Below, in pieces: positions 1-62,456 of a stretch of 64,000 bases of DNA. Positions within the stretch are counted from its first letter, which is position 1; each line of letters starts with the position of its first letter. The position numbers were made by a program, and so were the translations under genes. Below the pieces are notes generated by a model. That model had not been told where the DNA came from. It saw only the letters and a list, made by a program, of their open reading frames with translations, and made no database searches. This DNA comes from Oikopleura dioica (lineage: Eukaryota > Animalia > Chordata), in assembly GCA_907165135.1 (NCBI GenBank), contig OU015568.1:7998001-8062000 (forward strand), written 5' to 3'.

Positions 1-1
1 A

Positions 2-1962
2 TATGCCTCAGTAGACTCTGCGACGCCGAACCCGACGCCGCTGACTAAGATTCTTACGCCATTGCTGCTTCATTTGGTGCACAAGCAACTCGCCCAAGAC
101 TCCGTCATCGGACAAGACGGAAGCTGCAAAGAAATGCCCACACAGTGGCACACGGACTGGAAAGAACTGAAAGACTCCAATTCGCTGAAAAAGTGGCTAG
201 AATTAGCAGCAAAGAAGGTTAATCCAATTAACACGACGGTCAGAATCAAAGAAGTCGGCAAAGGAAACTCCAACTGGATTCTCTGGATCCCCTACAAAGT
301 GGTCCCCCAATTATGGGTCATTAATTACGGCGAGGACTCTGAGCATCTCAGAGAAAGATCCCTACTCTCAGTGGCAGCCCACCCAGCACTGGTACCACTA
401 GAATCTGAAGCGCTTGAGAAGCTGGCCTCGGAGCCGTGGACGACTCAAAACGTCAAGAAATGCATCGCGGCGTTCCAGAAACCAACCAGAAATTATTACG
501 CCTCCGGAGCCTGCATAGTCGGAATCAACCGACCCTTCCGAACTCAGAAAATCATCCTCGAAATCATCGCCAAAGTCGTCAAAGACTCCAAAGCCCACTC
601 CCATTTACGATCAGTCGAACACAATTTGGGAATCTTAACAACCGGCTGGAATTGGGCAAACGGGAAAAGATTCAGCCCGGACAAAACCCTCGACAGCTTC
701 ATCAGCACTTGGATGCGAAAAAGAGAAGAAGTCACAGGAGTCACGAGACTCAGATTCCTCCATTCACGCCCCGAGAAGCGCGAAAGATCTTGCGAATGGC
801 CAATGTGCGGAGAAGCCGAGGCAGATTCAACTTGGTGCAAAACACACCAAGGATTCCGAGAACTGAAAGAAGCCCGACAGCAAAACTGCTCACCAAATTG
901 CCAAGAAAGAAACGGCTTTGGCCTAATCAAGCCCACCCAAGAACACACCAGAATGGCTATCGACAGCGAAGAATGGCAGCAAACCTTTCTGAAGCTCTCA
1001 GAAACATTCAAGACAACAACGCTGAAAGACGCCGACGAAGAACTCATCGGGAGAATCCAAAACACAGCGGTGGAAGGTTTTGACTCGATTCTTGAGGCCT
1101 GAAATCTACGGCAGTCCTTTTCCAGGGAGAAAACGACACAACGTCGAACATTGCCAAAGGACTCAAAAAACTCGGCGGAGTCATAGAAAGACCAAGATTC
1201 GAAAGACCAGAAGCAGCAGGAATTGTCATCTATCACGCGGGTCTGGAAAGATGCGGAGGCAAATTCGATGCTTTCGTAGTTGGAAACACCACGGCCCCGA
1301 AGAATCTACACCTCCAAGAACTCGCTAAATCCATCGCAAGCGAATCTGGAGACAGCTGGTCGGAAGTGGCGAGACTCATCAAGGAACAGACATTCCAAAA
1401 GGACACTGTTCTGGTCCTCCCAGCCCAAGAAGATGCCAAAGCCCTAGAAAGAGCCCTCAGCACTTGGTCCGCCCCGTACGTCAAATTCGTCACCCAAGGC
1501 CTGATGAAGGATTTTCACCAAAAGCTTCGAGGAGACAAAAACCCAAGATTTTCGGGCCTTTGGGAAGTTTTTCAAATCGCTTGCGATTGCGGCTATGAAT
1601 CCAGATTCACCCCATGCTGGGCACACCCTAGGGTGGCGGAAATGATGGCCAGATGCTGCAACGGCCTCGACTCTAGAAATCGAGCTGTCTCAAAAATAGA
1701 CAAGCTCAGACTCAGGGCTAACAGAACAACCTGGGAAAACGTCACAGACAAGTCCCACGATTTGTCCCAGAATGCTCCATTCACGACTCACTTCAGAGAC
1801 ATCCTCTTAGACGGAATCAAAGCGGCGGAGAATCTAAACATGGACGAGGGAGCAACTGCCGGAGCCGAGAATCTCTTCCCAAACACTTGGACTCAGAACC
1901 TCCAGACCATCGAGGAAAGATTCGCACGAATGAATATGACCAAAACCCGAGAGAATAACTAG
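2..1962 (+). CDS. Element accessory ORF A, unknown (>620 aa, open at window edge), with C-x4-C-x9-C-x2-H motif
   Basis: Frame open from base 2 to 1076. GT-AG intron 1077-1114 (38 nt) joins it in frame to 1115-1962. Motif CEWPMC-GEAEADSTW-CKTH. Confidence 0.7.
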
Positions 1963-2755
1963 GAGAAATAGAAATCTGAATCCGCTTCTAGACTCTATTA
2001 GGAAAAGGCTCGAACGTAGGCCGTAAAAACGGACCGAACTTGAAATCCCCGAGCCTGGAAAAGACTCAAAACTCATCTCAAAATTCTCACACTGCTGTCA
2101 ACTGTTCAAAAACCTTCAAAACAGGAAAAGACTCGCCAAATATGAAGATTCTCAGCCAGAAATGAATCCCATAACACATAATACAGGATAATTAGAATCA
2201 AAAAGAGAGTCTTGTAAAAGAAATTCACTTCTTCCCAAAACGCGCAAAACTTCACAGCGATACCCATCAAAAGAGAATCAGAAAGCTTCAGAATCAGGAA
2301 ACGGACTCAAAATGTTAAAGAAATCCAAGCCAAAAACCAAAAGAATCCAATTTTGAGACCGTGGGAAAGTGAAAATTGACTCACGAGACGCAGCGCGCTG
2401 ATTGGCGGAGCACCTGGAAAGCCAAGGATAATCCAGCACTCATAACAGAGACGGCCAAATTGAATCAAATTTTTCTAAAAAAAAGAGAGAATCACCCTGG
2501 AATCCTTCTAAAGAGAAACATCTTCGACGCAGAAGCTTCAAACGCCCAGGACGCACAAAATTCTAGAGTCAATCTGTGGTTTTTCCGATTCTGAAAAACA
2601 GATTCCTTTTTTATTTTTATTTCTTTCTCTCAAATAAGGGAAAATCTTTTCCTTTCAAAAAAAAAAGAATTTTTCCTTTGCGCTCTCTCAAAAACCCAGC
2701 CAAATCTTAAAATTAAAATATTCGTGGCTAACAAGAATCAAAATTCAGACTCAAA

Positions 2756-3697
2756 ATGACTAAAGACGCAATAAACGCCCAGAATCCCGATGCCAAAGAG
2801 CTCGAAAGACTCAGAGAAGAAGCTGGAATCATCAGAGACCCGATCGACCAGCCAGACTTCTGGAGAGAGAGGAAATCGGCGATCAAGAAAGACCCAGTGA
2901 CTCAATACCCTCAGGAATCAAAAGGACGAATGCTCATCCGACTCCGTCTCAGAATTGGCGACAGATTCAAAGACCTGCTTGAGCAGATGGTCCAAGGAAT
3001 GGGTCTTATTAAATATAAAAAGTAAAAACTCTTCAAAACAAAAAGAATCAAATAGAAAAACCTAGCCATAACGACCCACACATAAGATTTCACGAATCCC
3101 AACGTCCAAATGTCGCTCGACAGCTGGCAAGGCTCAATCAACACGGTCTCCCGAGTCCTCTCCGAGCTTGTGCGCGAAGAAAATGCGAAAATCGCCGAAG
3201 ACGACCGAGCCCAGTCAAACCAGAGCCTGTTCTATGGATGCCTCAACGCAGCGAAAGCTGCCATCGATGTCCATCCGCTCCTCAACATCGTCTACATCGA
3301 TGAGTCCCTCGAGATTCCAGAAGCAAGACTCCCAGCATATCAAGAACGAGTCTCAGCTCTCAAGGAAAAGGGTCAAAATCGAGAATCTTACATTCAAAAA
3401 AAAAATAGAAAAAACCCTTCCAAAAGTCAAGAGCGGACTTTCTGTTCCGAGAAGATCGACTCCCCAAGGAGGAACTTCGCGATTGGAAGAGGACTCGACG
3501 AAGCGAATACGTCAAAGATGGAGTCCCCAAAGACATCGCAGCCACGCTGGCAAGACGCGACTCAAGAACCATCGGCTGGACTTCTCGTCGAGACGGAACT
3601 ACACAGACTCACCCGGTCGAAGCTCAACGAGCCAAATGCCAGGAAACTCAAACCTATCAAGGAACGGGCTGAAAAGAATCTCAAATTGAGTCCTTAG
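2756..3697 (+). CDS. Element accessory ORF B, unknown, spliced
   Basis: ATG 2756 follows cAG|actc. GT-AG intron 3003-3086 joins it in frame to ORF 3110. A likely further A-rich intron at ~3372-3426; final reading frame uncertain. Confidence 0.55.
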
Positions 3698-3925
3698 TAA
3701 TTTTAGATATTCAAAACTAAAAACTCTCAAAAAAAAGAACGCCATAAAACTAAACCACGCAAGCTAGCGTGGGAAAATCTCTGAGCCAAGAAAACTGACT
3801 CACACTAACTAATTCAAAAGATAGAATCAGTCCTGATCTCAAAAATCCAGGATAAATAAGGGCTAAAAGAAAACCTTAATTTTAGACACCTTTTCAGTCT
3901 CAATTCAGAATCAACAGATTCCTCG

Positions 3926-5417
3926 ATGCAGACAGAGACTCAAACCTCAACCAACTCGACTCAAACTCAACTGCCACTGCCATCAGACGACTCGAACAAC
4001 AACGAGCGAGCAAGCATTGACTCCGGCCCAGACTTCTTTGAAGACTCATACAACGCACGCTCAGGAAAGAGTCTTAGAGAAATCTAAAAAAAAAAAAGGA
4101 ATCTAATTAGTAACGGGACAAATCAAGACTCCACTAAAAGACCCATCCCAGCTGATGCCTTCGGCGAGCCACGGCCATCCAGCGGACTCCCCTGAAGACG
4201 GCTTTTCCTCAGACGAAGAAGTCCTGGAAGACTCAGAAGACGAAGGAGCCGAAGCCACCGCGGGATTCCCAGAGCCACAAAGCCAGGACAACCATCAAGA
4301 CTGGAGCCGAAGAACGGATACACTCTTCGAGTCAGCGGAGGAAGAAAAAGCAGCGGAAGAAAGACGACTCAGAATCGCCGCACGATGGAAAGAGCCGCTG
4401 GAAAACATAGAAGAAGAATCCGAATCCAACGCGTCGGCCAGAATGCACCAAAAAGAAGAGGCGGAAGAACAAAGGCGACTCCAAAAAGAAGAAGTCGACA
4501 GGCTCAAGAAGCTCAAGGAAGATCAGGAAGACAGAGAAAGAGTCAAAGAAGCCATCAGAGCCCGCATGAGACGCCAAGTGGAGGAGAACACGAGAATCCG
4601 CCGTGAATACTTCGAGGAAATCCAGCGGAAAAAGGAAGAACAAGAAGCTCAAGAAAGACGCCTGGCTCGAGACAGAGAAGCGGAAGAAAAGCGCCAAGCA
4701 GCCATCAAAGCGGAAGAAGATAAGGTGCTCACGAAGCCACAGGTGGGAATCTTGCTCGTCGCGGAAACCGGCAGAAGAGGAAACCATTACTACCTGTCGA
4801 AGAAAGAATCAAAGCTGATGAGCAGAATCTCAGGAATGGTTACACAGAAATCTAACTAATTAAAATCACAAACATAAGTAAAAAAGAAATCACTGTGTAA
4901 CCAAAAACGAGTCCGAGCGATGCTTGACAACCGCCGAATCGAAAACTTCGAAGAAATCAGACAAGCCTGGTTCAGCAGCGAGGGACTCCTCAAATACAAA
5001 GACTCCCAGAGCCCCGGCCATCGCCAGTTCAAGTACAACACCAGAGCCGGCTGGACCATCAAAGAAGGAACCGAAAACTGGAGATTGGACCCAGTTGCAG
5101 CACTCACCGCCGAGGAACGACGAATCGTCCATTACCTGGTGGAGTTCCTCAACTACCAGGGAATCAAGCGAAGATTCAAGGAAGCACTGGGTAAGTCAAC
5201 TCCCGTTAAAAAAAAAGAGAATCTAACTTATGATTTAGACCACGGACTCCTCGACCCCGCCAAGATGGACGCGATCCTCGTCTTCGCCTACAAAGTCTGC
5301 GGTGGTAACCTGGTCCACTACATCCGTTTCGTCTTCGTCCGCCTCTACAGACTCAACGACATCCCCATCCCTCCAGTCCACCAAGACGCCACACCAAAGC
5401 CACGACGCTTCCACTAG
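3926..5417 (+). CDS. Element accessory ORF C: acidic N-terminus, long E/R/K coiled coil, globular C-terminus
   Basis: ATG 3926. GT-AG introns 4071-4110, 4839-4886 and 5191-5238 join ORFs 4155-4859 and 4920-5417 in frame. Confidence 0.7.
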
Positions 5418-5811
5418 AAGAAGCCAAATCCAGACTCTTAGACTCAAACTGCCTTTTTATGCCTCAAATCACTGAAACAGAATCTTACCCTTTCTTCATT
5501 TTTCCAAATTTACAGAAAAGCTGTTCATAATAAATAATTTCGATCTCATCAGAAGATCCTCGCCTCTTCCTTTAGAAAGCATTAAAAAAAAAAATAAGAA
5601 ACTCTTTAAAACCAAAGCTGGAAAAGAAAATCAAAAACCAAGAAACACCAAAAATAGAATCAAAGTTCAGAATGGAGAGTCAAAGTTCAGATTCGGATTT
5701 GGAAGGCTTTAAACTCCCATCAGAATCAGGCTCGGGCCCGTAAGAAAATAAAAGAGTCACTCAAAATAAGAATAAACTTCTCAAAACATAAAAAAAAAAG
5801 ACTCTAAATAG

Positions 5812-7140
5812 AAGCCCCAAAAAACAGAGGATTCCGATGCAGAAGCCCCCACAACAGATCACCCAAAAAGCCCAATAGCGGCTAAACAAGCCACGCCGGA
5901 AACTCCCCCTCAAACGCGAAACTCTAGCGTGAATCTGGAGAGGCTCAAAGGCCTTGTTTGGGATATCCAAAATAGCCTTAATACGAATGCGTCAATCCCG
6001 CCAAAAAGAATCTTATGCTATGGAGAAACGCTAGAAGATCGAATTAAAAACCTAGCAACGGAAGCCGCGAGAATCATCTCCGAATCTCAAGAATCCTCGA
6101 AAATCATGAAAGCGATCCTTCAAGAGGCTGAGCATGAAGGCCTCCAGGGAATCCAACTAATAGATGCCTTCCAAACAATCGCCACAATCGCACATAGCCC
6201 ATCCATCGGAATCAACCGTAGACTCGCATCCACAAATAAGGTGGAGCTCGAAATGATTCAAGGCAAACTAGAACACTCGGTTAGACCAGTAGTCGAGAGA
6301 CTCATGAAACAGGTGCACGAATCAAACGTCTATAACTCAGCGGAAATAGTTTTTTGGGCAAAAATGATGGAACCATTGGAAAGAGACTCTGTCTCAAAAG
6401 CTGACCTTCTGAAGCTGGAAGAAGCAGTTTCCTGGATATTGGGCAGACTCTGGAATGACTCAGCAGAAGCCATCTTCAGAATGATTCTGGCGCGCTGCAA
6501 ACCTCCAGAAAACCTCAATTCACGTGCCTCTCCGCGAATGACGCTCATCGCCCACATTTGGAACATTAGGTTCAAAAATATACTAAACCTGAGCCCGGAA
6601 AAGCGTCGGGCATCCTTCGCGAACGAGAGGCAACTCTGCTCCTCCATCACCAACGCGATATTCGGGGAGATTCTTTTTCAACTTACTAACACCAGATGCA
6701 TCTTTCCGAGACTCTTATCAAGTGCAGCAAGATCAGCCTGGACTCACCTAAACACAATCTTCGGAGTCTCAAATCCAATTAGCATGACGCTCAGAGAGTT
6801 TTTAACAAACATCGACGCAAATCAAGATTTCACCGCCTGGGATGCTATCAGGACGCTTCGGGCAATCTGGCCACCAAGAGATCGCATCGCAGCCGCAGAA
6901 TACAGAGTCCTTAATCTCAACGACATCGACAACCGACTTGAAAGAGGACTCGAAGACCCATCCTCGCTTCTCGGCACTACATACGAGAAACTCTTCTGGA
7001 AGATTCCGATCCCAAGAAGCTATGAATCCGCCCGCGCAGCCGCAGGATTCAAAAGAAAGAGAACAAGCCAAGAAGCCGAAGAGCTGGAAGTCCATCGAGG
7101 TGGAAATGCGAGCACTAGCGGACAAGGGAGTCTTCAATAG
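5812..7140 (+). CDS. Element ORF D, helical protein in gag position, overlapping the start of pol
   Basis: Open frame 5812-7140 (track ORF 5929-7140), overlapping the RT frame from 7022. A possible first exon from ATG 5672 was not resolved. Confidence 0.65.
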   Translation, partial: KPQKTEDSDAEAPTTDHPKSPIAAKQATPETPPQTRNSSVNLERLKGLVWDIQNSLNTNASIPPKRILCYGETLEDRIKNLATEAARIISESQESSKIMKAILQEAEHEGLQGIQLIDAFQTIATIAHSPSIGINRRLASTNKVELEMIQGKLEHSVRPVVERLMKQVHESNVYNSAEIVFWAKMMEPLERDSVSKADLLKLEEAVSWILGRLWNDSAEAIFRMILARCKPPENLNSRASPRMTLIAHIWNIRFKNILNLSPEKRRASFANERQLCSSITNAIFGEILFQLTNTRCIFPRLLSSAARSAWTHLNTIFGVSNPISMTLREFLTNIDANQDFTAWDAIRTLRAIWPPRDRIAAAEYRVLNLNDIDNRLERGLEDPSSLLGTTYEKLFWKIPIPRSYESARAAAGFKRKRTSQEAEELEVHRGGNASTSGQGSLQ

Positions 7141-9524
7141 ACCAAAATTCCCAATCATAAACCCTGTCAACATTTATAACGAACCCATCACAGGCCCAAA
7201 ATCACTACCCGAATGGAAAATCTATGAGACAGACCTTCTTCACAGAGTCATAAGAGTTCTAAACAACGAGGCCAAACCCGACTGGGAAACCCTTGCGCTG
7301 AGAAAAGAATCTGACTTCATCGCGGGCCAATGGACTCATAACAAAGATAACTGGAGAGTCCTCATCCATCAGATGCCTGAAAAAGTGAAGCCGCTGATCT
7401 ACCATTTCGTCCATGGAGGAGCAGACCTGTTCTTGAATCTCAAAAGAATACCCCCCAAGAAACCTGCCGAATTCAAGCGGAAGGAGTTAGTGACAATATG
7501 GAAGCGAAATTCGGCCAACTCAGACACTTTGAGAAAACTAGGCGGAAATTTCAAAACCTGGTACAACCACAGACTCAGACTCTCAAAATTCGTCCCCCGG
7601 CCATATGAGAAGATCGGCAAACGCTACAAATCCCTCACGATTCCGAGCCAAGAAGCTGTAAGAGAAAGAAGCGACGAAATTGTCCAACAAATCACCGACT
7701 GGTGCGAAATGGGCTCGGTAACAAGAGTCACAGATTCAAAAGGATGCTGGATCCGAGCGGGATTCGTTCTCGTCGACAAACCAGGAAGAGAAACCAGAGT
7801 CTGTTGGAACGGTGGAGTCCTCAAGCCTCTGCAGCTGTACACATTTCCATGCAAATTAGAAAGCGTCGGTGCTGCAATCCAAATGCTCAAAAAGGGAGAC
7901 CTGCTGTACAAATTCGACGATAAAAAGGGTATCTAACTTAACAGCAAAAAAAAAGGAACCTAACTTAAAATCTAGGATTCCACCAGCTGCCTCTCAGCGA
8001 AGAGAGCAAGAAACTCGCTTGCTTCGATTGGGGCGGCCAGTACTTCAGAAACAATATACTCGCATTCGGAATCCCAGCCGCGCCTGGAATCTACCAGCTG
8101 ATGAATCTATGTGGAGTCAATTTTCTGAGGAAAAACGGAATCAAAATAACACTCTACCTCGATGATAGACTCCTAGCCGTCACTCCAGAATCTGAAGAAG
8201 ATCGACGCCAGCTTCTAGCGGGAGAGAAAGTCGGCAAAGAAGTCTGGGCAACAGTAGCGACGCTGGTGGCACTCGGCGGCTATGTGAACATCACCAAAAG
8301 CACCTTCAAACCCACCCAAAGAATCGAATTCCTTGGATTCATTTTGGACACGGAAAGCGAAACAGTGGAGATTCCGATGCAAAGATGGGCAGCCCTCAAA
8401 AACCTTATGAAAGAAGCCGAAGCGAAAACTGAAGTTCCGTCCCAGATGCTCGAAAGAATCAGAGGCACAATGGCAAGTATGGCCGAAGTCCTTCCGAACA
8501 TGAGAATGCTCATCCGCCAAACGACAATCCTCATCAGCCAAGCGCTCAGGGAAGAAAAAGAATCCTGCTTGCTGACAAAGGAAGTCCGCGAGGAATGGAG
8601 ACTCTGGACTCTTCTGAAAGAAAAAGGACTCAAAAGACATTGGACAAAGCTGAACCGCCAAGAAACAGGACTCATAATCTACACAGATGCTTCTTCACAC
8701 GCAGGAGCCATCGTCATCGAGCAATGGAAGCTGGAGGAGAGATTTGCTTGGGAAGCAGAAATGGCTGATAAACACATAGGAATCAAAGAAGCCCTTGCGA
8801 TTCAATTCACCCTCGAGTGGTACGGCCAAAAACTAAAGAACCAAAGGGCGCTGTTCCTCTGCGACAACGACAGTGTAGTCCAAGGAGCCATAGCGGGGAG
8901 CAAAGATCCCGAAATGAACACGATTCTAGTCAGAATCTGGACTCTCGCTCAGAGATTCAACATAGATATGAAAGTCGACTGGGTCAGCACAAAAGCAACT
9001 GGCTGACGCTCCCTCCAGGGATTTGGACTCCAGAGAACAAAAACTAACGGCAAATGGATTCGCTTATCTGCAATCTCACCTTTCGGACCCGCTCGACATT
9101 GACGTGGCAGCAACGGTAAGATTCGAAGAGAGTCGCCTTCCAAATCCAAAATTCCTTTTAGCCACTCAACAATAAATGCAGAGACTTCATCGCGCGCCGA
9201 GAGACAAAAGGAGCCTTTGGAAGAGACTTCCTAAGCTTCCCAATCCATGAACTAATCGGAAGAAAGCTGTACGCGTTCCCACCTCCGAAAATCGCCCACA
9301 AATACTACAATAGACTCACCGAAATAGCGACGCCATGGGCTTTAGTGGTGCCGTGTTTCGAAGCCGAGCCTTTAGTCGTAACTCAAGCTAAACTCAAAGG
9401 CTACAGAGTCTTTGACATCCCAGCGGATTCCATTTTAACACCAGCGAAGGTGAAAACCATCGAAGGCTACTGGAAAGTGGCGACCAACGTCTCAACAATC
9501 AAAATTATCGCAAATAGACTCTAA
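7022..9524 (+). CDS. pol: reverse transcriptase - RNase H - DIRS-type methyltransferase-like domain
   Basis: Exons 7022-7928, 7976-9115, 9162-9524. Intron 7929-7975 restores KFDDKKGFHQLPL; YLDD motif; RNase H acidic residues. A frameshift at ~9000 precedes LADAPSR. Intron 9116-9161 restores DIDVAATPLNNKCRDF...YAFPP. Confidence 0.9.
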
Positions 9525-9643
9525 TCAAGACTCTTTATACTGTTTTTCTCCTCTCTCTCTCAGATTCCCCATTCGGCCAAATCACACAAAGAAACAGAAA
9601 TTTTGACTCTCAAATTCCATTTTAGACTCGGAATCACTGAAAA

Positions 9644-10933
9644 ATGACGGAGCAGTCCAAAGCCCTCTCCAAGCTTCTCTCGGATCACACGAAGCTCACG
9701 GAACAAGAAGCGAAGACGCGGGCGGTCAGAGTCCAGATCACCAAGGCAGCATTCTACGAGCACACAAAGACTCAAGCCCAGACGGAAGAAGCCGATCGAC
9801 TGGTCGTCGAAATCGAAGATATCAGGAAAGATATGGCGACTCACGACAAACTCACCGATAGCCTTATCGTAAGTAAAACCCAAAAGAAAACTATTTCCTA
9901 TCATAGAAGGAAATCGCGGAACTCGAAGCAAACCGCGACAAGAGTCTCGAGATCAAAATGCGTGAACCCAACGCCAAAAAACGCTCGGAGGAGGAGAATA
10001 AATTCTACGACCGTTGGAATCCGTCGGAAATAGAATCAAAACTCCGCCGCCTGATCGCGGACAAAATGGAGCGCTACAGCCTCAAAGGAGCCATGTTCGC
10101 TCAAATTAAGACGAGAGAGACAAAAATCACTGAACTCTCTCAAAATACGGCCGAATCCGCAGCTGTATTCAAGGAAAAAGACCCTCTTACAGGCGTCGAA
10201 TCCTACTACATGGTAAGTTAAAAAAAAAAACACCAAGGAATCATCCTGGCCCTCCAACCCTTTCTTAGACTCAAGTCGGCTCCACAAACTTGCCGCAAGA
10301 CGAAGGAGACTCTCTCCGCGACATGGGCAAGGAATTTCGGGCTTTCGTCACAGACGCCAAGACTCAACGGACCTTTAGACGGGAAAAACTCCTGAAGTTG
10401 CTCGGTAACTACAAAAGAGCCATGACTCCCGAGTACACCGAACGAGCCATCATCGAAAGCGTCGTCGACGAACTGATCCGGATGCCGGATATGACTCGAA
10501 AAGATGCACTGCTCTCTCTTACGGTACGCGTTTGACTCTAAAAAGGAAAACTCACGCACCAATTAAGCCTCTTATGCGTCCGAATGTGCGCCACCAATTC
10601 GACAGAGCCATGACGATGAACACGACTCACCCAACCTTCAAGAAAATGATCATCAACCCCTGCGACGGTTCAGAGGACTGGCGATCTGAGCGAGACTCTA
10701 AACCGGGCCGAGGACGTCGAGGAGGACACGGAAGCGGAAGCCAAAGCAAGAAGCAAAAGACGGACCACCAGAGCGAAAACGCGAATCCCACCCCGGAAGG
10801 CAGCGGAAGCTCCGGAGGTCGTGGCCGAGGCCGCGGGCGAGGCCGAGGCCGAGGCCGCGGGCGAGGCCGTGGCGGAGGAAACAATCAAGGAGGAGACGCC
10901 AAAAAATTCCAAGACCAAGGCGGAGTCGAATAA
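9644..10933 (+). CDS. Element ORF E: coiled-coil protein with C-terminal RG-repeat tail (nucleocapsid/Gag-like), 383 aa
   Basis: Three phase-0 GT-AG introns (9869-9906, 10213-10268, 10524-10567) join four track ORFs in frame. Ends with a GR-repeat tract. Confidence 0.8.
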
Positions 10934-11146
10934 GAATCAAAAAAAAATAATCTAGAACCATCTTCGAAAATACTTCACTCCACGACGGGGATTAGCCCCT
11001 TATAGTGCGCGTTTCTTCATTTAGATTCTGTCTCAAAATACTAAAAAAAAAAACCCCAGCCGCAATCCGGCCAAGAGCCCCTTTTTTAATAAAAAAAAAA
11101 ACTAGGTTTTCCGAATTCAAACCATAAAAAATCACCGTTTAGACTC

Positions 11147-12330
11147 ATGACCTGGCTCGACTTTAAGAATCTTCTAGAGCACTGGGAGGTGGCAGAAGCA
11201 ATGGCCACTTTCAACTACAATGAGGCGGAAATCGACGACGTGATCCAACACTTCCTCGACAGACTCCTCACAAGACCAACGCTCAAGGCTTATGCGTACG
11301 AAAAAGGAATCACAACGATTCAAGATGTAGTCGCATCCCAGATGAAGAAGACTCTCACAGCAAAACAAAAAAGGAAGATCAAGACCTGGTGCGAACACAG
11401 AGCCCGTGAATCAGCAGCAGAAACCCTCCAATACCCCAAGGTAAACTCGCCTTTCGCATCGTAGTTTAAAACCTTCTAGCAAGCGGAAGTTGTGGACGAA
11501 CCAGAGGCAATCCGGCTGTGGGAGGAGCTCATGAGGACAAACAAGCCAAAGCCAAGAGAAGCAGCCATCGCCTTTTTCATCTGCTTCACCACGGGCGCTA
11601 GAATGAAGGAGGCACTCAACCTCAGAATCGAAGACCGCGAGATCGTCAAGGAAGAGGGGAAAGAGTTCTGGCGATTCCACATTCGAAGCAGCAAGACGGA
11701 CCCATTTTGCAAGCGCATGGAGACTCTAACCATCCCCATGGAGATGAAACACGGCGTCCCGCTGGCGCTGGAACTCAGAGCGCAGTTAAGAGACCGAGAT
11801 TCAGGTAAAAATGCTAGCGAAGCTTCTAAGAAATTATCTGACCATCTCCTTAAGGACTCGTCTTCAAGAATCTAGAAGGTCACACCAGAATCGCCTCGGA
11901 CTACCTGGCCCGCTACGGAGCAAAAGCGGAACTCCCGAAAAAAGTACAAAGACTTTAGAATCCACACACTTAAAAGACTCCTGTTCAGGTCTCCGCGCAT
12001 TCGGGCAGAGTCAGCTTCTACATCGAGGGACGCCGCTCAGGCCTTTCTCAGCAAACCCTCGCGCACACGCTCCGATGGGCTCCAGGAAGCTCAATGCCAG
12101 ATTACTACGAAAGATGCTGGCTCGAATGCAGTAACTTGGGAGCGCCCGTCAGCGTCGCGAAATCAAGAGCCAGAAAGCGAAACGGAAGCAACAACGAGGA
12201 TAACCATCTTCAGGTAAGAGTGGCAAAACAATTAGGGTTCAATCATAAAGGTTTCAGACACCACAAGAACCACAAGAAGCCAAGCAAGAGCAAAAGAAGC
12301 CGAAAACATCTGAGTCCTGAAAGAGCATAA
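11147..12330 (+). CDS. Tyrosine recombinase
   Basis: GT-AG introns 11441-11479, 11805-11854 and 11944-11988 restore one frame with FTTGARMKE, SSKTD, HSGR, LRW and MPDYY (R-K-HxxR-W-Y). A possible fourth intron at 12214-12250. Confidence 0.9.
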
Positions 12331-12429
12331 AAGATTCCTGCATCACAAAGAAAAGATTCTCCCTTTTTCCTGCCAAAAAATAAGAATCCTTTAGCAATCG
12401 ATTGATGAGAATAACGAGAATGGTAGGGA

Positions 12430-12474
12430 GGGAATATTCCCATTACCATTGTTATTTATGCGTGATTATAATAC
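12430..12474 (+). repeat. 45-bp direct repeat copy 1 (B1 of split direct repeats)
   Basis: gggaatattcccattaccattgttatttatgcgtgattataatac, identical at 12865-12909. Confidence 0.95.
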
Positions 12475-12864
12475 GAATCTAGGACAAAGGGATTAGCAGC
12501 CCGCTAGAAATAGAACGCGGCAGGAGAGCCTAGTAACCAATGGCAGGGACTCCCAGGACGCAGCAAAAGGTGACAAAGGCGCCCGAGAGCACCTGGTTTC
12601 GAGCGGGTGCACCGGAATCACGCAGGTTCACTCTAAAGGTTCTTAGCCTGCAGCTAAAACCTAAATCGAGAAATTTAAAATAGAGGCTTTTTCTCAGCAG
12701 AAGCATTACCAATAAGACTCCTAGCTGAATCAAAAGACTCACCCGCCCACCATCCCTGAAATAAGCAGTAAAAGTAGGGTAAACGAGCACACGCCCTACA
12801 TACTGCCCAGTCCTTATCCTTAGAAAGACATTTCTCTACCACAGTATTGTAATTGCGCGTGCTC

Positions 12865-12909
12865 GGGAATATTCCCATTACCATTGTTATTTATGCGTGA
12901 TTATAATAC
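12865..12909 (+). repeat. 45-bp direct repeat copy 2 (B2, element right terminus)
   Basis: Identical to 12430-12474. Host coding sequence begins immediately after. Confidence 0.95.
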
Positions 12910-13720
12910 AGGGCGAGCCCTTTGAGATTTGCCAGCCAGTTGTGGGTGTGCATTTCACGGAAGTGTCCACTTTTTGGCCGGTTGAGCATGATGCCTTTTT
13001 GGGTTAGATAGGTATAATCAAAATATCAATGAAGATTTTCTAAAGGTATATTTTTAACCATTCCTTACAAGTCACCGAGCCTTTCTTACTTTTGCATCTC
13101 CACTGAGCACCAGAATCTGCAATAGGAAACTCTGTGCTAGCATCTTCTTCTTTGCAAGAAATTTTACTACACGCATCTTGCCAGTATTTGCCTAAATCGC
13201 TGCTCTTGAACTTCCCATTTTTCTCGAAGCATGTCACTGATCCTTTGCTGCCTTCTTCAGCATCGCAAAGAACATCATAAACTGTGCTCGTTGGAGAAGA
13301 AGACACAGAGAGGATGGAGCCTTTGGAAATTTGCATCGAATCAGGGCAAGATTTGACAATTTCAGAGCATTTCAAAGGGTCTTTTGGGAAGCTTTTTGTT
13401 TTGAATTTGAGATCCTCGGGATTCTCTGTTTTGCAGCGGACGAAAACTTCCGGGATTTTCTTCTTCCAGTTCCCTACTAAGCCGTCATCACAGATGGCGA
13501 AACACTTCACATCTGACGCTGAATTTTCTAGCCCTTCGCAATCTCCAAAGTGACCGTTTTCAATTTGCATCTCTTCTCTTGCCAGGAAATTTTTCATTTC
13601 TCTCTCGCAGGGTCTTTCTGTCACCGTCCGGGGAAAATTTAACGGTTTTATTTTGTTCTCCCATTTGTCTTTCCATGCTGATTCAATAGAAGATATCTGG
13701 GCAAGAATAAAAAGCTTCAT
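12910..13720 (-). CDS. Secreted Cys-rich modular protein (possibly house/oikosin-like), 3' end abuts the YR element
   Basis: ATG 13720 with short hydrophobic leader; repeated C..C..G...C..W..C modules. GA-AG intron 13063-12995 gives TCK|ASCSTGQKVDTSVKCTPTTGWQISKGSPC. Confidence 0.7.
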
Positions 13721-14865
13721 TTTTGAAATAGAAATGTATAAAATGAAGGCTTAAAAATTCGCGTTATCGCTACTACTAGAAGAGGGCGCTGCAACAAGCG
13801 GGGGTCCCCTAAGTGCGGCTAATTCCCAATTGGACTTTCTCAAGAAACACTGATGGATTGATAAGGCTCAAGCGCCTCAAAGAACCTGATGGAGCACGTG
13901 TAAACACGTTAGCGTGTTTTGTAAAGCTTGATAAAAAAGCTGAACAGCAAATGTCTTCCTTATAGGATTTGGTCCACTTGCAAGCCTCTCAAAGATATAT
14001 AGGATATCAATAATATTATGCGCTTGTCTATGTGCTTGTCTGACATTTTCCTGCAAGAATTAAGTAAAGACAAGAAGCTGTATAAAATACACGTTCACAT
14101 AAGTAGCGGTGAGCGCGAGGGTGAAAAATGCGACCCGCGCGGCAACTCGTAGCGGTGTACCGGACCGGCAACTAGTAGCGGATGGCACAGTACTGTATTT
14201 ATACTGCTGAATTTATTTCTAAACATTAGCGTATGAGTTTATTTTCAATAGTCTTGAAGCTGTTAGAATAAATTGCTGAAGGCATCGATGAAATTGAAAT
14301 TGAATGTTACGGGAAAAAGTATAAACAGTAGAAATTCTAACTAAAGTAAATACAAAAATAATAAACGAGCAAATAAATTGTAAGAAGAAAAGGGGATTTG
14401 TTGGAGCTTTTGTTGGAGGCAGGGTTCTAAATCGACTAGTCGAGTTTCGACTAAAGTCGAAGTCGAGTCGAGTCTTAGTCGAAAAGACTAGCTCGACTCG
14501 ACTTGGTTGCTTGTGAGAAAAAGTCGACTCGACTCGACTAGAAAATCATATTGATTTCGACTTAATTTCGACTAGTCGAATAAGTCGAAAAAGAAGTTAA
14601 AGATGTAGTCGAAAAAGTCGAAAATCAAGTCGAAAAAGTCGAAAATTGAGTCGAAAAAGTCGAAAATCAAGTCGAAAAAGTCGAAAATTGAGCCGAAAAA
14701 GTCGAAAATTTAGTCGAATAAGTCGAATTGAAAAGTCGAAAACATTCGGCAGTGAACTCAAATCTTTTCTAGATTTTATAAAAATAGTAAGAATTTTCTG
14801 AAGATATCATATTTCATATTTTTTTAGAAGCGCTTCATCGGTCGCCATCTTTCTTTTTACCTCGC

Positions 14866-16799: not shown

Positions 16800-18560
16800 A
16801 TGATTCCGACACATACCTTACCTGTTAAGAATCTCCAGCAATTGCGGAGTCTTAGAGGTATCAAAAGGTTCACGAGTAATTGGGCGGTAGCCCTTTGCCG
16901 ATCCCCCTTTGAGCTGGTGCAAACGAGCGGCTTTCAATTTGATTTCATTGAGCTTTTGAGCACGGCGTTGGGTGTCGAAGCATCGTGCATCGTCGCACAG
17001 GGCGATGTTGATGTTGTTGAAGTCGTGGGCGTTCGAGTATTCCTTCAAGATACAATGAAAAACATGTCGAATACAAATCGACTTACTTCTATCAGAAGAC
17101 GATTAGATTGCGAAATGAATTCACTCGGAAACTGTGATACTTTTACACTAGAACTCCTAGACAGCGTCAATTCCAGCGAGCAACCCCAAGAGCTAGGATT
17201 TATAAGGTAAATACGACTAGTTTTTTGACGCTAGTTACCAGAACTGAATGATTCCTCTAGAACTGATGGCGATATAAACACTATTCGGTATTTTCTTGAG
17301 ATTTTCGATCACCAGTTGGACGCGTTTCCAAGTGGCGAGTTGAGATAAAATGGCGGTGATGTTCTGGACCTTGGAGAAAGTGAGGGATCGTGCGAGCACG
17401 ACTTTTGACAGGAAGAGGTTTTCTTTGAATTTTGCTTGAGTTTGGGCTTGACTCGGAGAAAAAATAATATGAATGTCAGGTAGTTGGCAAGCATACTTCA
17501 ATAAGTCAATTTAGAAGAGCGTCCCTTTCCTAATTTTGCAGAAGTAAAATCAGTGACTTTTGCCTGATTGAATTGTGTGAAGCTTGCTGGGCTGAGCAGA
17601 ATGGGCTTTGAGAAGAAGAGTTGATACTGGTGCTCCGAATCGGAGGACAGCGAGAGTTCTCCGAAAAGATCTTCTGTCCCGTTGCTTGAATCAATTTGAT
17701 TGGAAATAATTAGATTCTCTCTTACCCGAAAGAATTCAAAATCGGCACTCTGAGAAAGTTCATGCCCGCACGGAGATGGCAGCCAGGTACAAGTAGATTT
17801 ACTCGGTTTTCACATTCCTAAGAAGCAAGTTCATCTGCTGACGGCAAGATGGGATTATGAACCTGTAAAAGCCGCTTTCTGCTGGCTATTTTTGAAGGGG
17901 TTCTGTCACTCTTTGATCCAAAGAATTCCATTAGTCTCCTTTAGAATGAGCGAATTTAGAATCGGTTAATTTGAAATCTACTCGCCTTATTTTCGTTTCA
18001 ATCGTGTTCCACTCTCTTTTCTGCAGACTCTCGCTCGTCGCCTGACACTCTTGCCACTTTCCCTCGGCAAAGTTCCCGAAATTCATCGAATTTATGAAGC
18101 ATTGCTTTACGTGGCCAAGAGTGAACTTTAGATAGATGTAGTTTCCTTCGTGGACGAACAAATCTTCGCAGTTTCCATTTTGACTGGCTGATTTTTGAAG
18201 ACCGACTTTTACAAAAGCTTTCAAAAAAGAATTTCAAATCAAATTTATCATATAAAAAGTCATACTCTGAACTCAACAACCTGTGTAGAAACCTGAGTCA
18301 GGGTCAGGATTCTACACAGGTTGCGAGACCCAGCAGCCAGTAAGCATAAATGAAAGCGCTTTCCTTCAAAATGTTGCTCCTTGGCGAGTCGTCTGATTCT
18401 GATGAACAACTCCTGGCTCCACTGATCCTCGGAGAGATTCCTGACATCGATGCTGCTCTCGAGCTTCTTGACGAGATCTTCTGGCCACGGGGACAGCTTC
18501 ATGGCGATGGCCGACCAGCGAGATTTCAGCATAACTCACGACGCATTTCGATTCTGAAAG
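16800..18560 (-). pseudogene. Decayed minus-strand coding remnant, probably TE-derived
   Basis: Series of protein-like minus-strand ORF fragments (18260-18532, 17931-18224, 17235-17501, 16818-17048) broken by in-frame stops. Family not recognised. Confidence 0.3.
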
Positions 18561-25602: not shown

Positions 25603-28600
25603 ATGAACTCGCAAGTTAGAAAAAGTACTCTTTTGCTCGGAGGTGCGCTGGGGATTTTCATCTATGCATTTTTCAAGCGAAAAAATAGAGGACCTAGGAA
25701 AGTTGGGAAGGTGGTAGAACTCGTTGTTTACCCACTCAAATCGGCAAAGGGAAATTATCATGAAACGTAAGTAGAAAAGAATTTTTTCAAAAAATAGAGT
25801 TTATTTAAAAAATAGAAATATATGGGCAGATAGTATTATTGAAAAGAGGGTCTAAAAGATGTTCGTCTTCGTGCTGGAAGCTCGTCTGCTTCTTCTGGGA
25901 TTATTTCCACGTCGTTGTCCTGATTATCCTGACCGTACATTCCAGGCTTGAAAGAGGTTCTGCGACGAGCTGCGTCGCCACTTTTGGTGTCCACTTTCGT
26001 CCTGATGACTTTAGGATTGTAGGTCATCCGACGTTCCGCTTGCTTTCGCTCAGCGATACGACAGAAAACGCACTTTCCAGTGAAGAGATTTTCGTTTGTC
26101 GTAGAAACCGGGAAGGGGCGGGCGCACTCGATGCAAAGCTCAGTACGTACTCCTGCGTCTTTTTTGTTGTTCTATCAATGAAATTGTTGAGTACAAGTTT
26201 TATTTGCGTTACCTGAACTAAGGGAATCTTATCGATGTCTTCAATGTTCCAATATCTTATCGTTCCGTCTTTGCAGCCAGATATTACTCGAGTACCTTCA
26301 ATATTTCCTTCCACAGTATTGACCCAGTCTTGATGCCCCTGAAGGGGAATTTGCGCCATTTCGTGATCAAGATTCCAAAGCATAACTCGTTTGTCGTAGC
26401 CACCAGAAACCATGTGCTGTCCACGGCTGTTTTTTTATACTTATTTATTTATCAAAAATTTTATTACCTGTAAATGCGCACAGAAGCCACACTTCCATGA
26501 TGAGCAATGGCGAATTGCTCGCGAAGTGTCCCTTTTCTTCTATAATTACCAGTGGAAACATCCATCATCCTTATCGACTTGTCCCAGCTTCCAGAGACAA
26601 GCATTCGTTCGTCTTTATCAAAGCAGATTGAGGAAACGGCGTTCGAATGCTCGTGAAACTTGAGGGTGAATTTTCGAGCTTTGACGTCCCAAATCATGAC
26701 TTCGCCCTAAATAAGACTGTTTTGGAGTTCTCAAATTTATTTTACCTGTAGAGTACCAATGGCAATTCTTTGTGAGTTTGGGCTGAACTCTAGACAAGTA
26801 GGTGTGGAGTCAAGTTGAATCGTATCAAATTTGTTATCTGTCCTAGCATCGTAAATGATCGCTTCATTCTTGATGTCCTGCGTTACTGCGTAGTATCTGG
26901 AGTTGTTAGAATAGTCACAGCTTGTCAACAGACCCTCGTGGTCGATATCTAAAATTTCCTCGCCAGAGTGTTTGTCAAAAAGATGCAGAGTTTTGTCCAA
27001 AGATACGGCTTTTGGAGATTTCAATTTTCAATTCCTGTTCCGCGTTAAAAGAGCCCTGTCGGACCCATCAAAGATTATATAATAACATAACATGTTTAAA
27101 ATTAATGTTGCTCAATAATTGCATATTATACCTTGTTAAAATATTTTGAAAGAGATTCGGTTCTACAAATATGGTTTTCTTGGTGTATTCTTTGGATATA
27201 AGCCCTCAAAAAGGACATTCAAAAATAAAATTTAATACAAAACGTGTCAAAAGATATTAATTGAGATCTTATTCAATGGAATACTTAAATTAATTAAACA
27301 CGCGTTCATTCACTAAGGTTTATGATATTCACCAGTTAATATTTCTCTAGAAATAATTGAGAAATCTCGTACATAAAATGACATCTTCATTATTTTCGAC
27401 TGATTTCAACGCTGCCGCGTTGTGCCCAAACGTCGACAAGGCCTGTCCAGTCTCTACTTCCCACAGGGTCGTGTTAGTATCATCAGATGCTGCAAGAAAC
27501 TGGCGCTGGTCTTTAGTAAATCGAATCGTGTTGATCGCCGCATCTGCTCCCTGAACACAGCGAACGGGATGTTCGATAGTTCCTCTTGCTCCCACGAAAG
27601 ATTCATCTTTTGATTTTATCAAACTAGCAAAAACAAGGAGAAAACTAGAACTAGAAAATGCTTTTACAAAACGATTATTCAATTGTTTGTGCTATGACTA
27701 CTTTGCTTTGTTTAATATTTTCCTAGCGCTATTGCTGCGAAAACTGGACTTCAAGGAGAAAATGACGGACTTGTGGATAGAACTTTCGCCATAAGAAGAG
27801 CGGATGATAACACGAAAAGTAAAAGAAAAATTATGAAACTTTCTATCTAAATTTGAAAAGTTAGCGGTCGTGAATGCCCGAAACTCGTCCTGGTATCCTG
27901 CCGAAGAGAAGGGGATCAACTCGTTGTCACTGGACCCGGAATGGAACACGAGTTGCACGTTCCAGTGAAGAGCTCGGGAAATGACACGAAACTTGAACTA
28001 TTTGGAACGTGGATAGATTGCCAAGAGGGATCTGAAGAAGCTGCCAAGTGGTTTACTGAGTACTTGGGCCTGGAAGTCAAGCTTAGCATCAATGCAAACG
28101 GGCGTTTTCTCCGAGACAATGAAAAGGATTGGGCGCGCACGTGGCGCTTAGAAGGAGTTCCAGAGGAAGACCATGAGACAGCTTTTGCTGATGGAGCACC
28201 GATTCTTATGCTTAGTACGCAGAGCTTGGTGGATATCAATTCAAGGATTCAGCACAAGTCCTATACCATGAAGACCTTTAGACCAAACATCATCATCTCG
28301 ACAGAGAACGGAAAACCATGGGATGAAGATGAATGGTGTGGAAAGCTACAGATCGGAGAAGCAATACTGGCAGTTTCTAGCCCGTGTCCTAGGTGCATCT
28401 TTACAACGATCGATCCTGAAACTGCGCAGAGGTAAATTTTAACTGATAGCCTTTCAGGAATGCCCTTCTTTACTATACTTTGCAGAGACAAAGAGTTGGA
28501 GCCCCTCAAATCACTTCGAAAATTTCGCATGTCAAAGGGAAAAGATGCAAACTACGGCATTGATTCTCCTCTAGTTGGAGTCAACGTCGTTATTATCAAA

Positions 28601-28769: not shown

Positions 28770-30170
28770 TTACTTTCGTCCTCGATTAAGGAGTCCCCAT
28801 CTGTTTGGTCGTTTCTTTTGTTTCTTTTTTGGCTTTTCCTCTTCTTCTTCCTCGACAAAGTCATTGCCGAATCCAAGGCCAGTATCCATCAACATTCCGT
28901 TGTTGTTACAGGAACCGTCCTTCACGTATCGAATAGAAAAGTCATTTGCACAAGATGCACTTTGGAGGAAGCTGAGATTGGTGTATTCTATGCCATCACT
29001 ACCGCAGACGATTCTCATGTCACGAGTTTGGAATTTCGGGCAGCATCCGCCAGGGTGGACAACTTCGATAGGGATGTTTTGCTCGCATGCAGCTTTGTCC
29101 ATCAAGCATGAGTTGGTGTAGGTTACTCCATCTGAGCCGCAGACTTCACTTCTGAAAGTTCCACAGCTAGGGCACAATTTAGGGATTCCAACATCCATTT
29201 GCATGCCATTGTCTTCTTCTTCTTCTTCCTCTTCCTCTTCGGCTTCACATGGACCTTGTGAGACGATTCTCCAAGTTTGAGCAGATTGATCATATGTATC
29301 GGCGCTATTGTCTTGAGCCTCGCACTTGGCCCAGAGGAAAACGATATCGTTTGCGTACTCTTCGCCGTTGCTAGCACAGACAGGAGCGTACATTCGATGT
29401 GGTGGATTTAGACGAGTGATCTTCTCATCTTGGAAGCAAGCAGTGACTTCCATAGCGCACTCGTTACTGTATCTGTTTCCGTCGGAGCCGCAGACCGGGT
29501 CGAAGATAGCAGGACAGGCTTTTTCGCAACGTTGAGCACGGGTAAACGCACACGCACCATCAGTAGCTTCCCAATCGCGTGCGTTCTTGTCTCCCTCTCG
29601 TTGAGCGTCGCATTTGGCCAGGACAAACATGTCTCGATTGCCATAAGTGACACCGCCGTGGCAGACTTGATCAAGCATTCTATTGGCGCCGACTTGCTCG
29701 CGTACATCACTGCCGTTTAGGCAATTCTGGAGTCTCATCTGACACTCATTGTCATAGAGAACGCCATTGTCGCCGCAGACGGGATCGTAAATACGAGGAC
29801 AGTAAATGCGGCACTCTGGCTCTTCTGGCTCCTCGATTTCTTCCTCTTCTTCCTCTTCGCCGACGTCTAGGAGCATTTCGTTGACGGAACAGTCCGTGCC
29901 CCGTCGGAGAAACTCGAGGTCTTTGTTTCCGTAGCAGTATTCCGATTTGAAGATGCAGGGGTTCGCTCTGTACTTGCCGTCAGTACCACAGATTGGGTCC
30001 CAGTAGAGTTCCGTGCACAAGTTTTTCTTCAAGTAGTTGGTGCAGTCAAGCTCCTCCATTGGCTGCGTCTCGAGGTCGAAGTCTGGCTCCTTAATTGTAG
30101 GTCTGACGATGTAGCTCTCGAAGTCCCATCTTGCAGTCGCCGTTGCAACAAAAGCAGCAAAAGTTTTCAT
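28770..30170 (-). CDS. Secreted multi-Kazal (about 7 domains) protein with poly-Glu linkers, intronless
   Basis: ATG 30170 (MKTFAAFVATATA); repeated PVCGSDGxxYxNxC motifs in a single open frame. Confidence 0.9.
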   Translation of the reverse strand: MKTFAAFVATATARWDFESYIVRPTIKEPDFDLETQPMEELDCTNYLKKNLCTELYWDPICGTDGKYRANPCIFKSEYCYGNKDLEFLRRGTDCSVNEMLLDVGEEEEEEEIEEPEEPECRIYCPRIYDPVCGDNGVLYDNECQMRLQNCLNGSDVREQVGANRMLDQVCHGGVTYGNRDMFVLAKCDAQREGDKNARDWEATDGACAFTRAQRCEKACPAIFDPVCGSDGNRYSNECAMEVTACFQDEKITRLNPPHRMYAPVCASNGEEYANDIVFLWAKCEAQDNSADTYDQSAQTWRIVSQGPCEAEEEEEEEEEDNGMQMDVGIPKLCPSCGTFRSEVCGSDGVTYTNSCLMDKAACEQNIPIEVVHPGGCCPKFQTRDMRIVCGSDGIEYTNLSFLQSASCANDFSIRYVKDGSCNNNGMLMDTGLGFGNDFVEEEEEEKPKKKQKKRPNRWGLLNRGRK

Positions 30171-30358
30171 TTTTTGTATTTGATTTGAATCCTCGTTTAG
30201 TTTTCTAACTAGGGATTGATGTGCTGGAGGAGAGCTGGAGCTGGTTAAATAGCAAGAGAGCCCTATGCCAGCGGGCACGTTCGCCTCGCTGACACCACCA
30301 GTTCTAACGCTCCACCACCATGAGAAACTATGACTAGGACCATCAGCAGATGCATTCG

Positions 30359-54814: not shown

Positions 54815-62456
<7,642 letters not shown>

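Follow-up and report, generated by a model that had tools for sequence, protein, structure and literature searches.

A probable 14.7-kb retrotransposon of the DIRS order, with split direct repeats, seven genes and introns, in Oikopleura dioica

The stretch considered here (hereafter the window) comprises 64,000 nucleotides of contig OU015568.1 of the larvacean Oikopleura dioica, and its first 12,909 nucleotides belong to one element of 14,686 bp in the Okinawa assembly OKI2018_I69, of which they make up the right-hand 12.9 kb. This element is most probably a single retrotransposon of the DIRS order, bounded by split direct repeats and carrying seven genes on the same strand. A first-pass annotation, made from the letters of the window, had proposed an oversized retroelement with a tyrosine recombinase (YR) and accessory genes, in a block still open at base 1; the element does run another 1,776 nt further left (its full span is OU015568.1:7,996,224-8,010,909), and one pair of split repeats encloses all seven genes. 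In the locus extended to the left (L006, OU015568.1:7,992,155-8,012,859, where window base 1 is L006:5847) the element lies at L006:4070-18755, and its parts are the following, with coordinates of the window except where L006 is named; ORF stands for open reading frame and RT for reverse transcriptase.

L006:4070-4335, 1.78 kb left of the window: A1, the left repeat, 266 nt, twin of A2.
1-1962, plus strand: ORF1, the last 1.96 kb of a 2.96-kb gene whose start is at L006:4846, 1,001 nt left of the window.
2756-3697, plus strand: ORF2, a basic protein of about 260-280 amino acids, in two or more exons.
4155-5417, plus strand: ORF3, whose first part is acidic and rich in Glu and Lys and whose C-terminal domain is basic and conserved.
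5929-7140, plus strand: gene D, a predicted all-alpha protein, stop-free from 5812 and overlapping the start of pol.
6842-9524, plus strand: pol, with an N-terminal extension, then RT and a putative RNase H, and finally a C-terminal domain of 120 amino acids that is conserved; two shared introns.
9644-10933, plus strand: gene E, about 384 amino acids, basic, in four coding blocks that are collinear in all copies.
11147-12330, plus strand: the YR gene, about 331 amino acids in several short exons.
12430-12474, plus strand: B1, a 45-nt direct repeat, perfect match to B2, starting with a palindrome.
12475-12740 (L006:18321-18586), plus strand: A2, 266 nt, twin of A1.
12741-12864, plus strand: the spacer between A2 and B2, 124 nt, unique, without counterpart after A1.
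12865-12909, plus strand: B2, a perfect copy of B1 and the right end of the element, with its palindrome at 12865-12876.

The layout is therefore A1-[seven genes]-B1-A2-(124-nt unique spacer)-B2. The left repeat had been predicted to lie beyond the window as a copy of 12475-12864, and it is indeed found there, upstream of ORF1 and not just upstream of gene D, with 266 of 266 bases identical to A2; the prediction was too long, however, in that only 266 of the 390 nt separating B1 from B2 recur, and the repeated part is 12475-12740. A1 was found neither within the window nor in the Bergen loci L001-L003, whose left sides were too short, and came to light when the left flank of the window and the loci of the Okinawa assembly were included. 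The 12-nt palindrome GGGAATATTCCC with which B1 starts (12430-12441) is exact in L002, L004, L005, L006, L010 and L011, and the first 13 nt of the B repeat occur twice in the window, against 0.09 occurrences expected by chance. No target-site duplication of fixed length is present in the flanks of the six complete copies described below; the element itself shows no full-length terminal direct repeats of the type of long terminal repeats (LTRs), nor any inverted terminal repeats (ITRs) or internal complementary region (ICR), the only inverted pairs being of 18-29 nt, at chance level, and none of them linking the termini. The plus strand is A-rich from base 1 to about 12,500, with an AT skew of 0.19-0.51 that then falls to about 0, in agreement with the uniform composition first claimed for the block; the composition of the element and its similarity to other copies both end at 12909, all long ORFs of the block are on the plus strand, and no part of it is found again in the remaining 51 kb of the window.

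An A1-[ORFs]-B1A2B2 layout has been defined for elements of the Ngaro/PAT type (PMC8547959, PMC13465315, PMC5890265), and by its termini the element belongs with these split-direct-repeat elements. Of the features of the DIRS order, RT, a YR in place of a DDE integrase and insertion that leaves no target-site duplication are present, and an RNase H downstream of RT is weakly matched; the ITRs and ICR of DIRS1-like elements are absent, and the element departs from the size and from the three-ORF norm of all the superfamilies. This norm, on which the claim of an oversized element leaned, is backed by the literature, since all known DIRS1-like elements are shorter than 6 kb and have three ORFs (PMC3266345), and Ngaro elements, such as those of Cafeteria burkhardae, are of about 6 kb (PMC8547959).

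The element is not solitary. Six complete copies, including that of the window, are present in the Okinawa assembly, each of 13.9-14.9 kb:

L006, the window copy: 14,686 bp, A1/A2 identity 100% (266/266).
L004, chr1: 14,723 bp, A1/A2 identity 98.2%.
L005, Y-specific region: about 13.9 kb, with an internal deletion, A1/A2 identity 96.9%.
L009, X-specific region: about 14.85 kb, A1/A2 identity 100%.
L010, chr1: 14,507 bp, A1/A2 identity 100%.
L011, PAR: 14,604 bp, A1/A2 identity 100%.

The terminal repeats are thus identical in four of the six, which indicates recent insertion, and the insertion of the window copy, being one of these four, looks recent. The Bergen reference assembly contains four copies of a distant family (L001, L002, L008 and a truncated L007), in which the RT protein is 59-64% identical to that of the window family and the non-coding DNA no longer aligns with it; in addition, a metagenome contig (L003) bears a further relative of ORF1. 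The order ORF1, ORF2, ORF3, D, pol, E, YR, which was read in L004, L005, L009, L010 and L011 (complete) and in L001, L002 and L008 (Bergen), is constant in every non-truncated copy of both families, in two O. dioica lineages, the accessory genes travelling each time with pol and YR. The count of seven genes was also correct from the start, but not their partition: what had been called A and B are both ORF1, and the stretch from B to D holds ORF2 and ORF3. As for the possibility that these ORFs occur elsewhere as unlinked host genes, the ORF1 homologues with readable surroundings (L001-L011) are all found within such elements, while the other ORF1 matches, which are short metagenome or unplaced fragments, were left unplaced. 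In the Bergen copies the A-rich composition extends over more than 14.6-15.2 kb.

Conservation within the window's family is uneven, reaching 0.91-0.95 at the termini, 0.75-0.88 in the coding blocks and 0.44-0.62 in the intergenic parts; the spacer at 12741-12864, with 91-95% identity among copies of the same family, is among the best conserved DNA of the element. Between the two families, the B repeat is 85-92% identical, against 64-70% for the pol DNA, and is the sole non-coding segment that can still be aligned.

It could be argued that the block is a composite, in which an ordinary YR retroelement of 6-7 kb (D-pol-E-YR) is placed beside, or nested in, an unrelated element or gene cluster (ORF1-ORF3). 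Such an origin would account for the lack of recognisable retroelement domains in ORF1-ORF3, for a synonymous divergence (dS) that in ORF1 and D differs from that of the other genes, and for L007, where the ORF1-to-D part stands alone; yet L007 ends in an assembly gap, with more than 2 kb of N, and a composite would have to reconcile the identity of A1, upstream of ORF1, with A2, downstream of YR, with the fact that in no copy is there an A- or B-type repeat between ORF3 and D. As, moreover, the same order and spacing recur in two families whose non-coding DNA does not align, and the A-rich composition is uniform throughout, a composite is very unlikely indeed, and a single element enclosed by a single pair of split repeats is the preferred explanation.

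The ratios of nonsynonymous to synonymous substitution (dN/dS), obtained by comparing the codons of the window copy with those of L004 and L005 and pooling the counts over gene pieces, are the following:

ORF1: 0.08-0.19.
ORF2: 0.36-0.38.
ORF3: 0.22-0.23.
D: 0.06-0.07.
pol: 0.09-0.11.
E: 0.12-0.14.
YR: 0.06.

All seven genes are under purifying selection, and this bears directly on the alternative that ORF1-ORF3, and perhaps E, are captured host genes, that is, passengers that serve the host, or nothing at all, and not the element. In two families that have diverged, passengers would not have remained under such selection in all copies. The host-like architecture of the element, with many introns of about 45-60 nt compared with a host median of about 49 nt (PMC8008620), and the known gain of foreign domains by elements of the DIRS type (PMC5890265) would be in keeping with a capture. 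Nevertheless, a profile of ORF1 compared with 1.84 billion representatives found 17 relatives, and every one of these with a labelled source is from O. dioica or a marine metagenome, which leaves no homologue beyond them in that search, and the ORF1 homologues that can be placed are, as stated above, all inside elements. Captured passengers are therefore very unlikely, although a capture long ago, after which the element turned the genes to its own ends, is conceivable and would not contradict the explanation preferred here of a single element with seven genes of its own.

The RT and YR domains are recognisable, both of them split by introns. In pol, the Pfam family RVT_1 matches window:7969-9003 with 35.0 bits and an E-value of 1.5e-8 (cut-off 29.6 bits), and L004 with 35.8 bits; the match leaves out the first third of the profile, which an intron sets apart from the rest, and the Pfam search of ORFs trimmed to their first start codon gave nothing, again because an intron splits the RT domain, RVT_1 appearing later with stop-to-stop pieces. 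A YLDD motif is visible in the translation, and the piece that bears it has, in a protein search, relatives at 60-67% identity that carry PF00078 and come from O. dioica and marine metagenomes; the protein searches gave close relatives of Oikopleura type and no others. Searches of PDB with single sequences of the pol and YR pieces found nothing. The pol gene had initially been read as RT, RNase H and methyltransferase (MT), of which the RT stands. The RNase H is weak (Pfam RT_RNaseH, E 0.15), though a TDAS motif is visible in the translation and UniRef names two relatives (P0004 and P0005) "ribonuclease H" and "RNase H type-1 domain"; the RT/RNase H profile has no match in PDB. The methyltransferase is unconfirmed: the domain after RNase H (9162-9521; 120 amino acids, 54-61% identical between families) occupies the position of the DIRS "MT" domain and has no methyltransferase match in Pfam or in PDB, the PDB profile search included. 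Indirect support for it would come from the ReDoSt screen, which needs an MT profile hit and took up four O. dioica sequences (PMC3266345).

The YR gene, for its part, is what it had been taken for. An HSGR sequence (the HxxR motif) and a downstream Tyr are visible in window:11974-12327, and no Pfam family scores higher than Phage_integrase with the box-I exon of five copies (the window copy, L001, L002, L004 and L008), although the scores, of 15-23 bits, remain below the cut-off because introns split the domain; the recorded gene products of L001 (spliced), L004 and L006 carry PF00589. The Pfam family rve has no match in the element, though it matches the Ty3/gypsy-type pol that lies elsewhere in the window (see below).

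According to the public gene models of the Bergen copies, pol contains short GT-AG introns, whose position was examined by seeking, in each copy, the GT-AG interval that best restored the protein alignment across the junction, with the following outcome:

pol intron i1: phase 1, in nine of nine copies, 40-60 nt.
pol intron i2: phase 0, only in L001 and L002, 48-51 nt; the other seven copies are coding-continuous.
pol intron i3: phase 0, in eight copies by the alignment test, the ninth (L001) having a 54-nt intron in the public model; 45-77 nt.

Taken together, i1 and i3 measure 95 nt in L004, 105 nt in L010 and 104 nt in L011, exactly as the independent public models of the Okinawa assembly imply. 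From the spans and lengths of the public models of L004, L010 and L011, which were rebuilt, three introns are implied in E and four in YR, of about 45-56 nt each and, in YR, of about 45-50 nt; a joint optimisation of the intron bounds of these two genes over pairs of copies was discarded, as it favoured implausibly long "introns", so that their introns rest on shared block structure and on the rebuilt models. ORF1 is intron-free, D has no GT-AG solution, and in ORF2 and ORF3 the intron structure is ambiguous. The element would thus contain roughly a dozen introns, as implied by the public models, those of pol being the ones verified across families. The lineage-specific i2 fits either an occasional loss via a partly spliced template or a gain.

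The shattered look of pol and YR in the window is therefore mostly exon-intron structure. That the supposed introns are instead decay, papered over by gene predictors, in a dead relic of a family that no longer functions, is extremely unlikely: the pol interruptions fall at the same codon and in the same phase in nine copies of two families, with GT-AG ends, host-typical lengths and freely varying sequence; seven copies lack i2 cleanly, their coding sequence running on without a break; the dN/dS values are of 0.06-0.38; and A1 equals A2 in four copies. The public models do vary from copy to copy, as a relic would lead one to expect, and there are real disruptions in the window copy, L004 and L005. 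Those of the window copy are two small deletions outside long homopolymer runs, one a frameshift in ORF1 where its relatives are uninterrupted, the other a frameshift in pol relative to L004, L010 and L011; no other disruption was detected in it, within the unverified exon models of ORF2, ORF3, E and YR. The evidence on the whole favours a functional family of the element here described, of which the window copy would be a recently inserted member with two frameshifts.

The remaining five genes had no family match in the searches made. In L004 (3218-6172) and in L005 (6251-9205) ORF1 is one intact frame of 984 amino acids, and in L009-L011 it is free of stops over 1,004-1,020 amino acids; it has no Pfam family, no PDB match (profile search included) and no fold match, its AlphaFold model (pLDDT 55) having no significant Foldseek match in PDB or BFVD. 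ORF2 is annotated as one gene of 258 amino acids in L004 (6960-7863), but the annotation of the window copy divides it in two (L006:8602-8871 and 8956-9543); its amino-acid identity is of 70% to L004 and L005 and of 31% to the Bergen copy L008, and it has no Pfam match. The ORF at window 4155-4859, in ORF3, is by exact look-up the protein P0024 of the Okinawa assembly, and the C-terminal domain of ORF3 is kept in all the Bergen copies (31-36% amino-acid identity), likewise with no Pfam match. Gene D has nine homologues at 44-87% identity, six of them from the Okinawa assembly, and an all-helical AlphaFold model (pLDDT 69.5), with no match in Pfam and none in PDB by sequence or profile. This model has no significant Foldseek match in PDB or BFVD and lends no support to a Gag or capsid fold, and D is Gag-like by position only. 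Gene E, finally, has no Pfam match and bears an Arg-Gly repeat near its C-terminus (10815-10878), and may be RNA-binding.

Proteins of this kind invite the thought that the element is an endogenous virus, that is, an integrated infectious reverse-transcribing virus whose structural proteins would be ORF1-ORF3, D and E. Reverse-transcribing viruses have genomes of comparable size and gene number, selection acts on four orphan proteins, relatives are widespread in marine metagenomes, and O. dioica is host to the envelope-bearing Tor elements (PMC4402516). An envelope gene was rejected, however, as no ORF has a predicted membrane segment; the searches by sequence and by fold gave no capsid-like, protease or envelope match; larvacean DNA in samples of plankton would account for the metagenome matches just as well; and a resident element of the nucleus is a better fit than a virus for about a dozen introns of host type. 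A virus is thus unlikely, and the "virus-like" organisation of the first-pass annotation survives as an analogy in gene number and splicing, no capsid, protease, envelope or membrane protein having been found.

Short spliceosomal introns would be present in six of the seven genes, and they are retained in every copy. In an element copied from RNA this implies that the template copied must be a wholly unspliced RNA, and that the proteins would come from spliced messengers. According to the published model for such elements (PMC3266345), a full-length transcript would be reverse-transcribed by pol, and its terminal redundancy, with the internal B1/A2 junction as a guide, would lead to a DNA circle in which B2 is joined to A1, to be inserted by the YR without target duplication. 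The conserved B repeat, with its palindrome, would be the likely cis site of this insertion step.

With respect to the internal genes, a T(C/T)AG acceptor-like motif is found within 25 nt upstream in 14 of the 21 gene starts, often directly preceding the ATG, against 22% of all the ATGs in the elements, an enrichment that is suggestive only. As most starts are just 3' of such a motif, the internal genes would probably be reached by splicing. Cis-splicing from a common leader was considered and is unsupported, no conserved GTRAG donor having been found in the 5' leader; this favours either the trans-splicing of a polycistronic precursor or internal promoters, which occur in some Tor elements (PMC4402516), over leader splicing in the manner of retroviruses. 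Spliced leader (SL) trans-splicing of a polycistronic precursor, in an animal that uses operons, would be the best guess.

As a separate observation, a 97-nt repeat occurs twice, 3.2 kb apart, at L002:15237-15333 and 18435-18531, starting about 600 nt downstream of the L002 element. It looks like the O. dioica spliced-leader RNA gene, in which the leader has ...AACAG as its end and is followed by GTAAG.

The accessory proteins are soluble and highly charged, one of them with an Arg-Gly repeat, and would most likely build or regulate an RNA-protein particle, or else keep the genomic RNA unspliced. A bolder proposal, which is tentative and on balance doubtful, is that this is a "complex" YR retroelement, in which ORF1, ORF2, ORF3 and E would be dedicated machinery, either for a new kind of particle or for a Rev-like handling of RNA, by which a fully unspliced RNA of 14.7 kb with about a dozen introns of host type would escape the spliceosome and be reverse-transcribed, while spliced, and perhaps SL trans-spliced, messengers would be produced from the same locus. 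If this were true, it would represent an independent rise, specific to larvaceans, to a genome complexity of the level of viruses.

Several points weigh against the interpretation of the block as a single functional retrotransposon of the DIRS order, or against parts of it. In the first place, the RNase H and the "MT" domain are unconfirmed by Pfam or PDB, and the searches made yielded no function, fold or family for any of the genes ORF1, ORF2, ORF3, D and E. Secondly, the dS between the window copy and L004 or L005 is uneven by about threefold, with values of about 1.5 for ORF1 and D and of 0.45-0.85 for the other five genes, which may be the result of recombination between element lineages or of saturation. 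Thirdly, disruptions in at least L004 and L005 join those of the window copy, and no single copy is established as fully intact. The unique 124-nt spacer between A2 and B2, moreover, is outside the textbook scheme of split repeats. Lastly, in the statistic on acceptor motifs kin copies were treated as independent and some of the starts come from gene predictions, and splicing, trans-splicing and an unspliced genomic RNA are all deduced from nucleotide patterns.

Among known systems, Ngaro-like elements, which include those of zebrafish and fungi, share with the present element the split direct repeats, an RT with a putative RNase H followed on the same strand by a YR with HxxR and a catalytic Tyr, and the lack of a DDE integrase, a protease and target-site duplication. 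They nevertheless measure about 6-7 kb, have three ORFs or in some cases four, and are not reported to contain introns, in contrast to 14.7 kb, seven genes and about a dozen introns; they have neither the 124-nt unique spacer between A2 and B2 nor a conserved extra domain after RNase H, and the presence of such a domain here speaks against a place among the Ngaro-like. DIRS1-like and PAT-like elements resemble it in the layout of pol (RT, a putative RNase H and an extra domain, and then YR), and the PAT-like also in their split direct repeats; but their pol has a Dam-like MT domain, an identity unconfirmed for the extra domain here, and the element is without the inverted terminal repeats and internal complementary region of the DIRS1-like. 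SymbioDIRS-Dnmt3 of Symbiodinium (PMC5890265) is similar in its DIRS order, its A-coding-B-A-B repeats and the addition of a function, although in that case a single recognisable domain derived from the host has been fused into pol, and here there are four separate orphan genes.

At a greater distance, complex retroviruses and the Tor elements of O. dioica, which are Ty3/gypsy elements (PMC4402516), are alike in outline: they possess several genes in addition to gag-pol, copy a full-length RNA that has not been spliced, and serve their downstream genes by spliced or separately initiated messengers. The present element differs from them in having no LTRs, protease, DDE integrase or envelope, and in being integrated by a tyrosine recombinase, and its pol, unlike that of retroviruses, is readable only after splicing. 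The Terminons of bdelloid rotifers, reportedly described by Arkhipova and co-workers in 2017, are said to be giant retroelements with many accessory ORFs, telomeric, with an RT of the Penelope type and often a GIY-YIG nuclease, and without YR, and their Penelope-like relatives can reportedly keep introns. Unlike these, the element has RVT_1, a Ty3-like RNase H region and a YR, with no hint of a Penelope-type RT.

Listings of DIRS1-type elements in O. dioica go back to 2004, so that what is new would be the organisation, and not the presence, of an element of the DIRS type. This organisation looks undescribed: no description of a 14.7-kb, seven-gene and intron-bearing element was found in the searchable literature, some relevant older accounts being outside that scope. 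The ReDoSt screen, which needs profile hits of RT, MT and YR in order, gave four O. dioica sequences in two families, and the 2011 survey took 5 kb on either side of the RT (PMC3266345), so that the present family would have been cut in half.

Elements of this kind have been reported at less than half the size of the present one, and a lineage that is stable at 14.7 kb, with four extra genes under selection in two diverged families, means that accessory-gene complexity is not confined to retroviruses and Terminons. It also raises the questions of how an element copied from RNA keeps about a dozen efficiently spliced introns of host type, and of how an animal with operons and trans-splicing expresses a polycistronic retroelement. 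There is, in addition, a matter of annotation, as in both public O. dioica assemblies the genes of the element pass as ordinary unnamed host proteins, in models that vary by copy, in some of which D is merged with pol or E with YR, while most of ORF1 is left without annotation.

On the left side of the element there is a gene of the trypsin family (L006:3109-3940, minus strand), and a Cys-rich ORF of 226 amino acids, with no Pfam match, lies 130 nt to the right of its end (13040-13720, minus strand). In the rest of the window there are the following:

27941-28435, plus strand: an ORF with a MOSC domain, an ordinary host gene.
28770-30278, minus strand: a protein of 502 amino acids with six Kazal-type protease-inhibitor domains and acidic Glu runs.
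39754-41284, minus strand: exons of an M1-family aminopeptidase, an ordinary host gene.
48683-51550, plus strand: a second, unrelated retroelement, with an intact Ty3/gypsy-type pol of 955 amino acids (RVT_1, RT_RNaseH_2, Integrase_H2C2, rve).
56316-61148, minus strand: PRP8 (PROCN, RRM_4, U5/U6 snRNA-binding, domain IV), 1,610 amino acids in one uninterrupted exon.

The second retroelement is probably a Tor element; further ORFs of the plus strand are near its pol (46974-47507, 52111-52593 and 52758-53813), and a downstream ORF of 351 amino acids, with no Pfam match, could be a third gene. Near two copies of the 14.7-kb element, an 82-nt stretch, at window 14419-14500 and L010:1033-1114, is 94% identical in opposite orientation and looks like a short dispersed repeat, and about 2 kb upstream of the copy in the Y-specific region there are long inverted repeats (L005:2665-3393), unrelated to the element, with arms of 228 and 104 nt that are 93-94% complementary.

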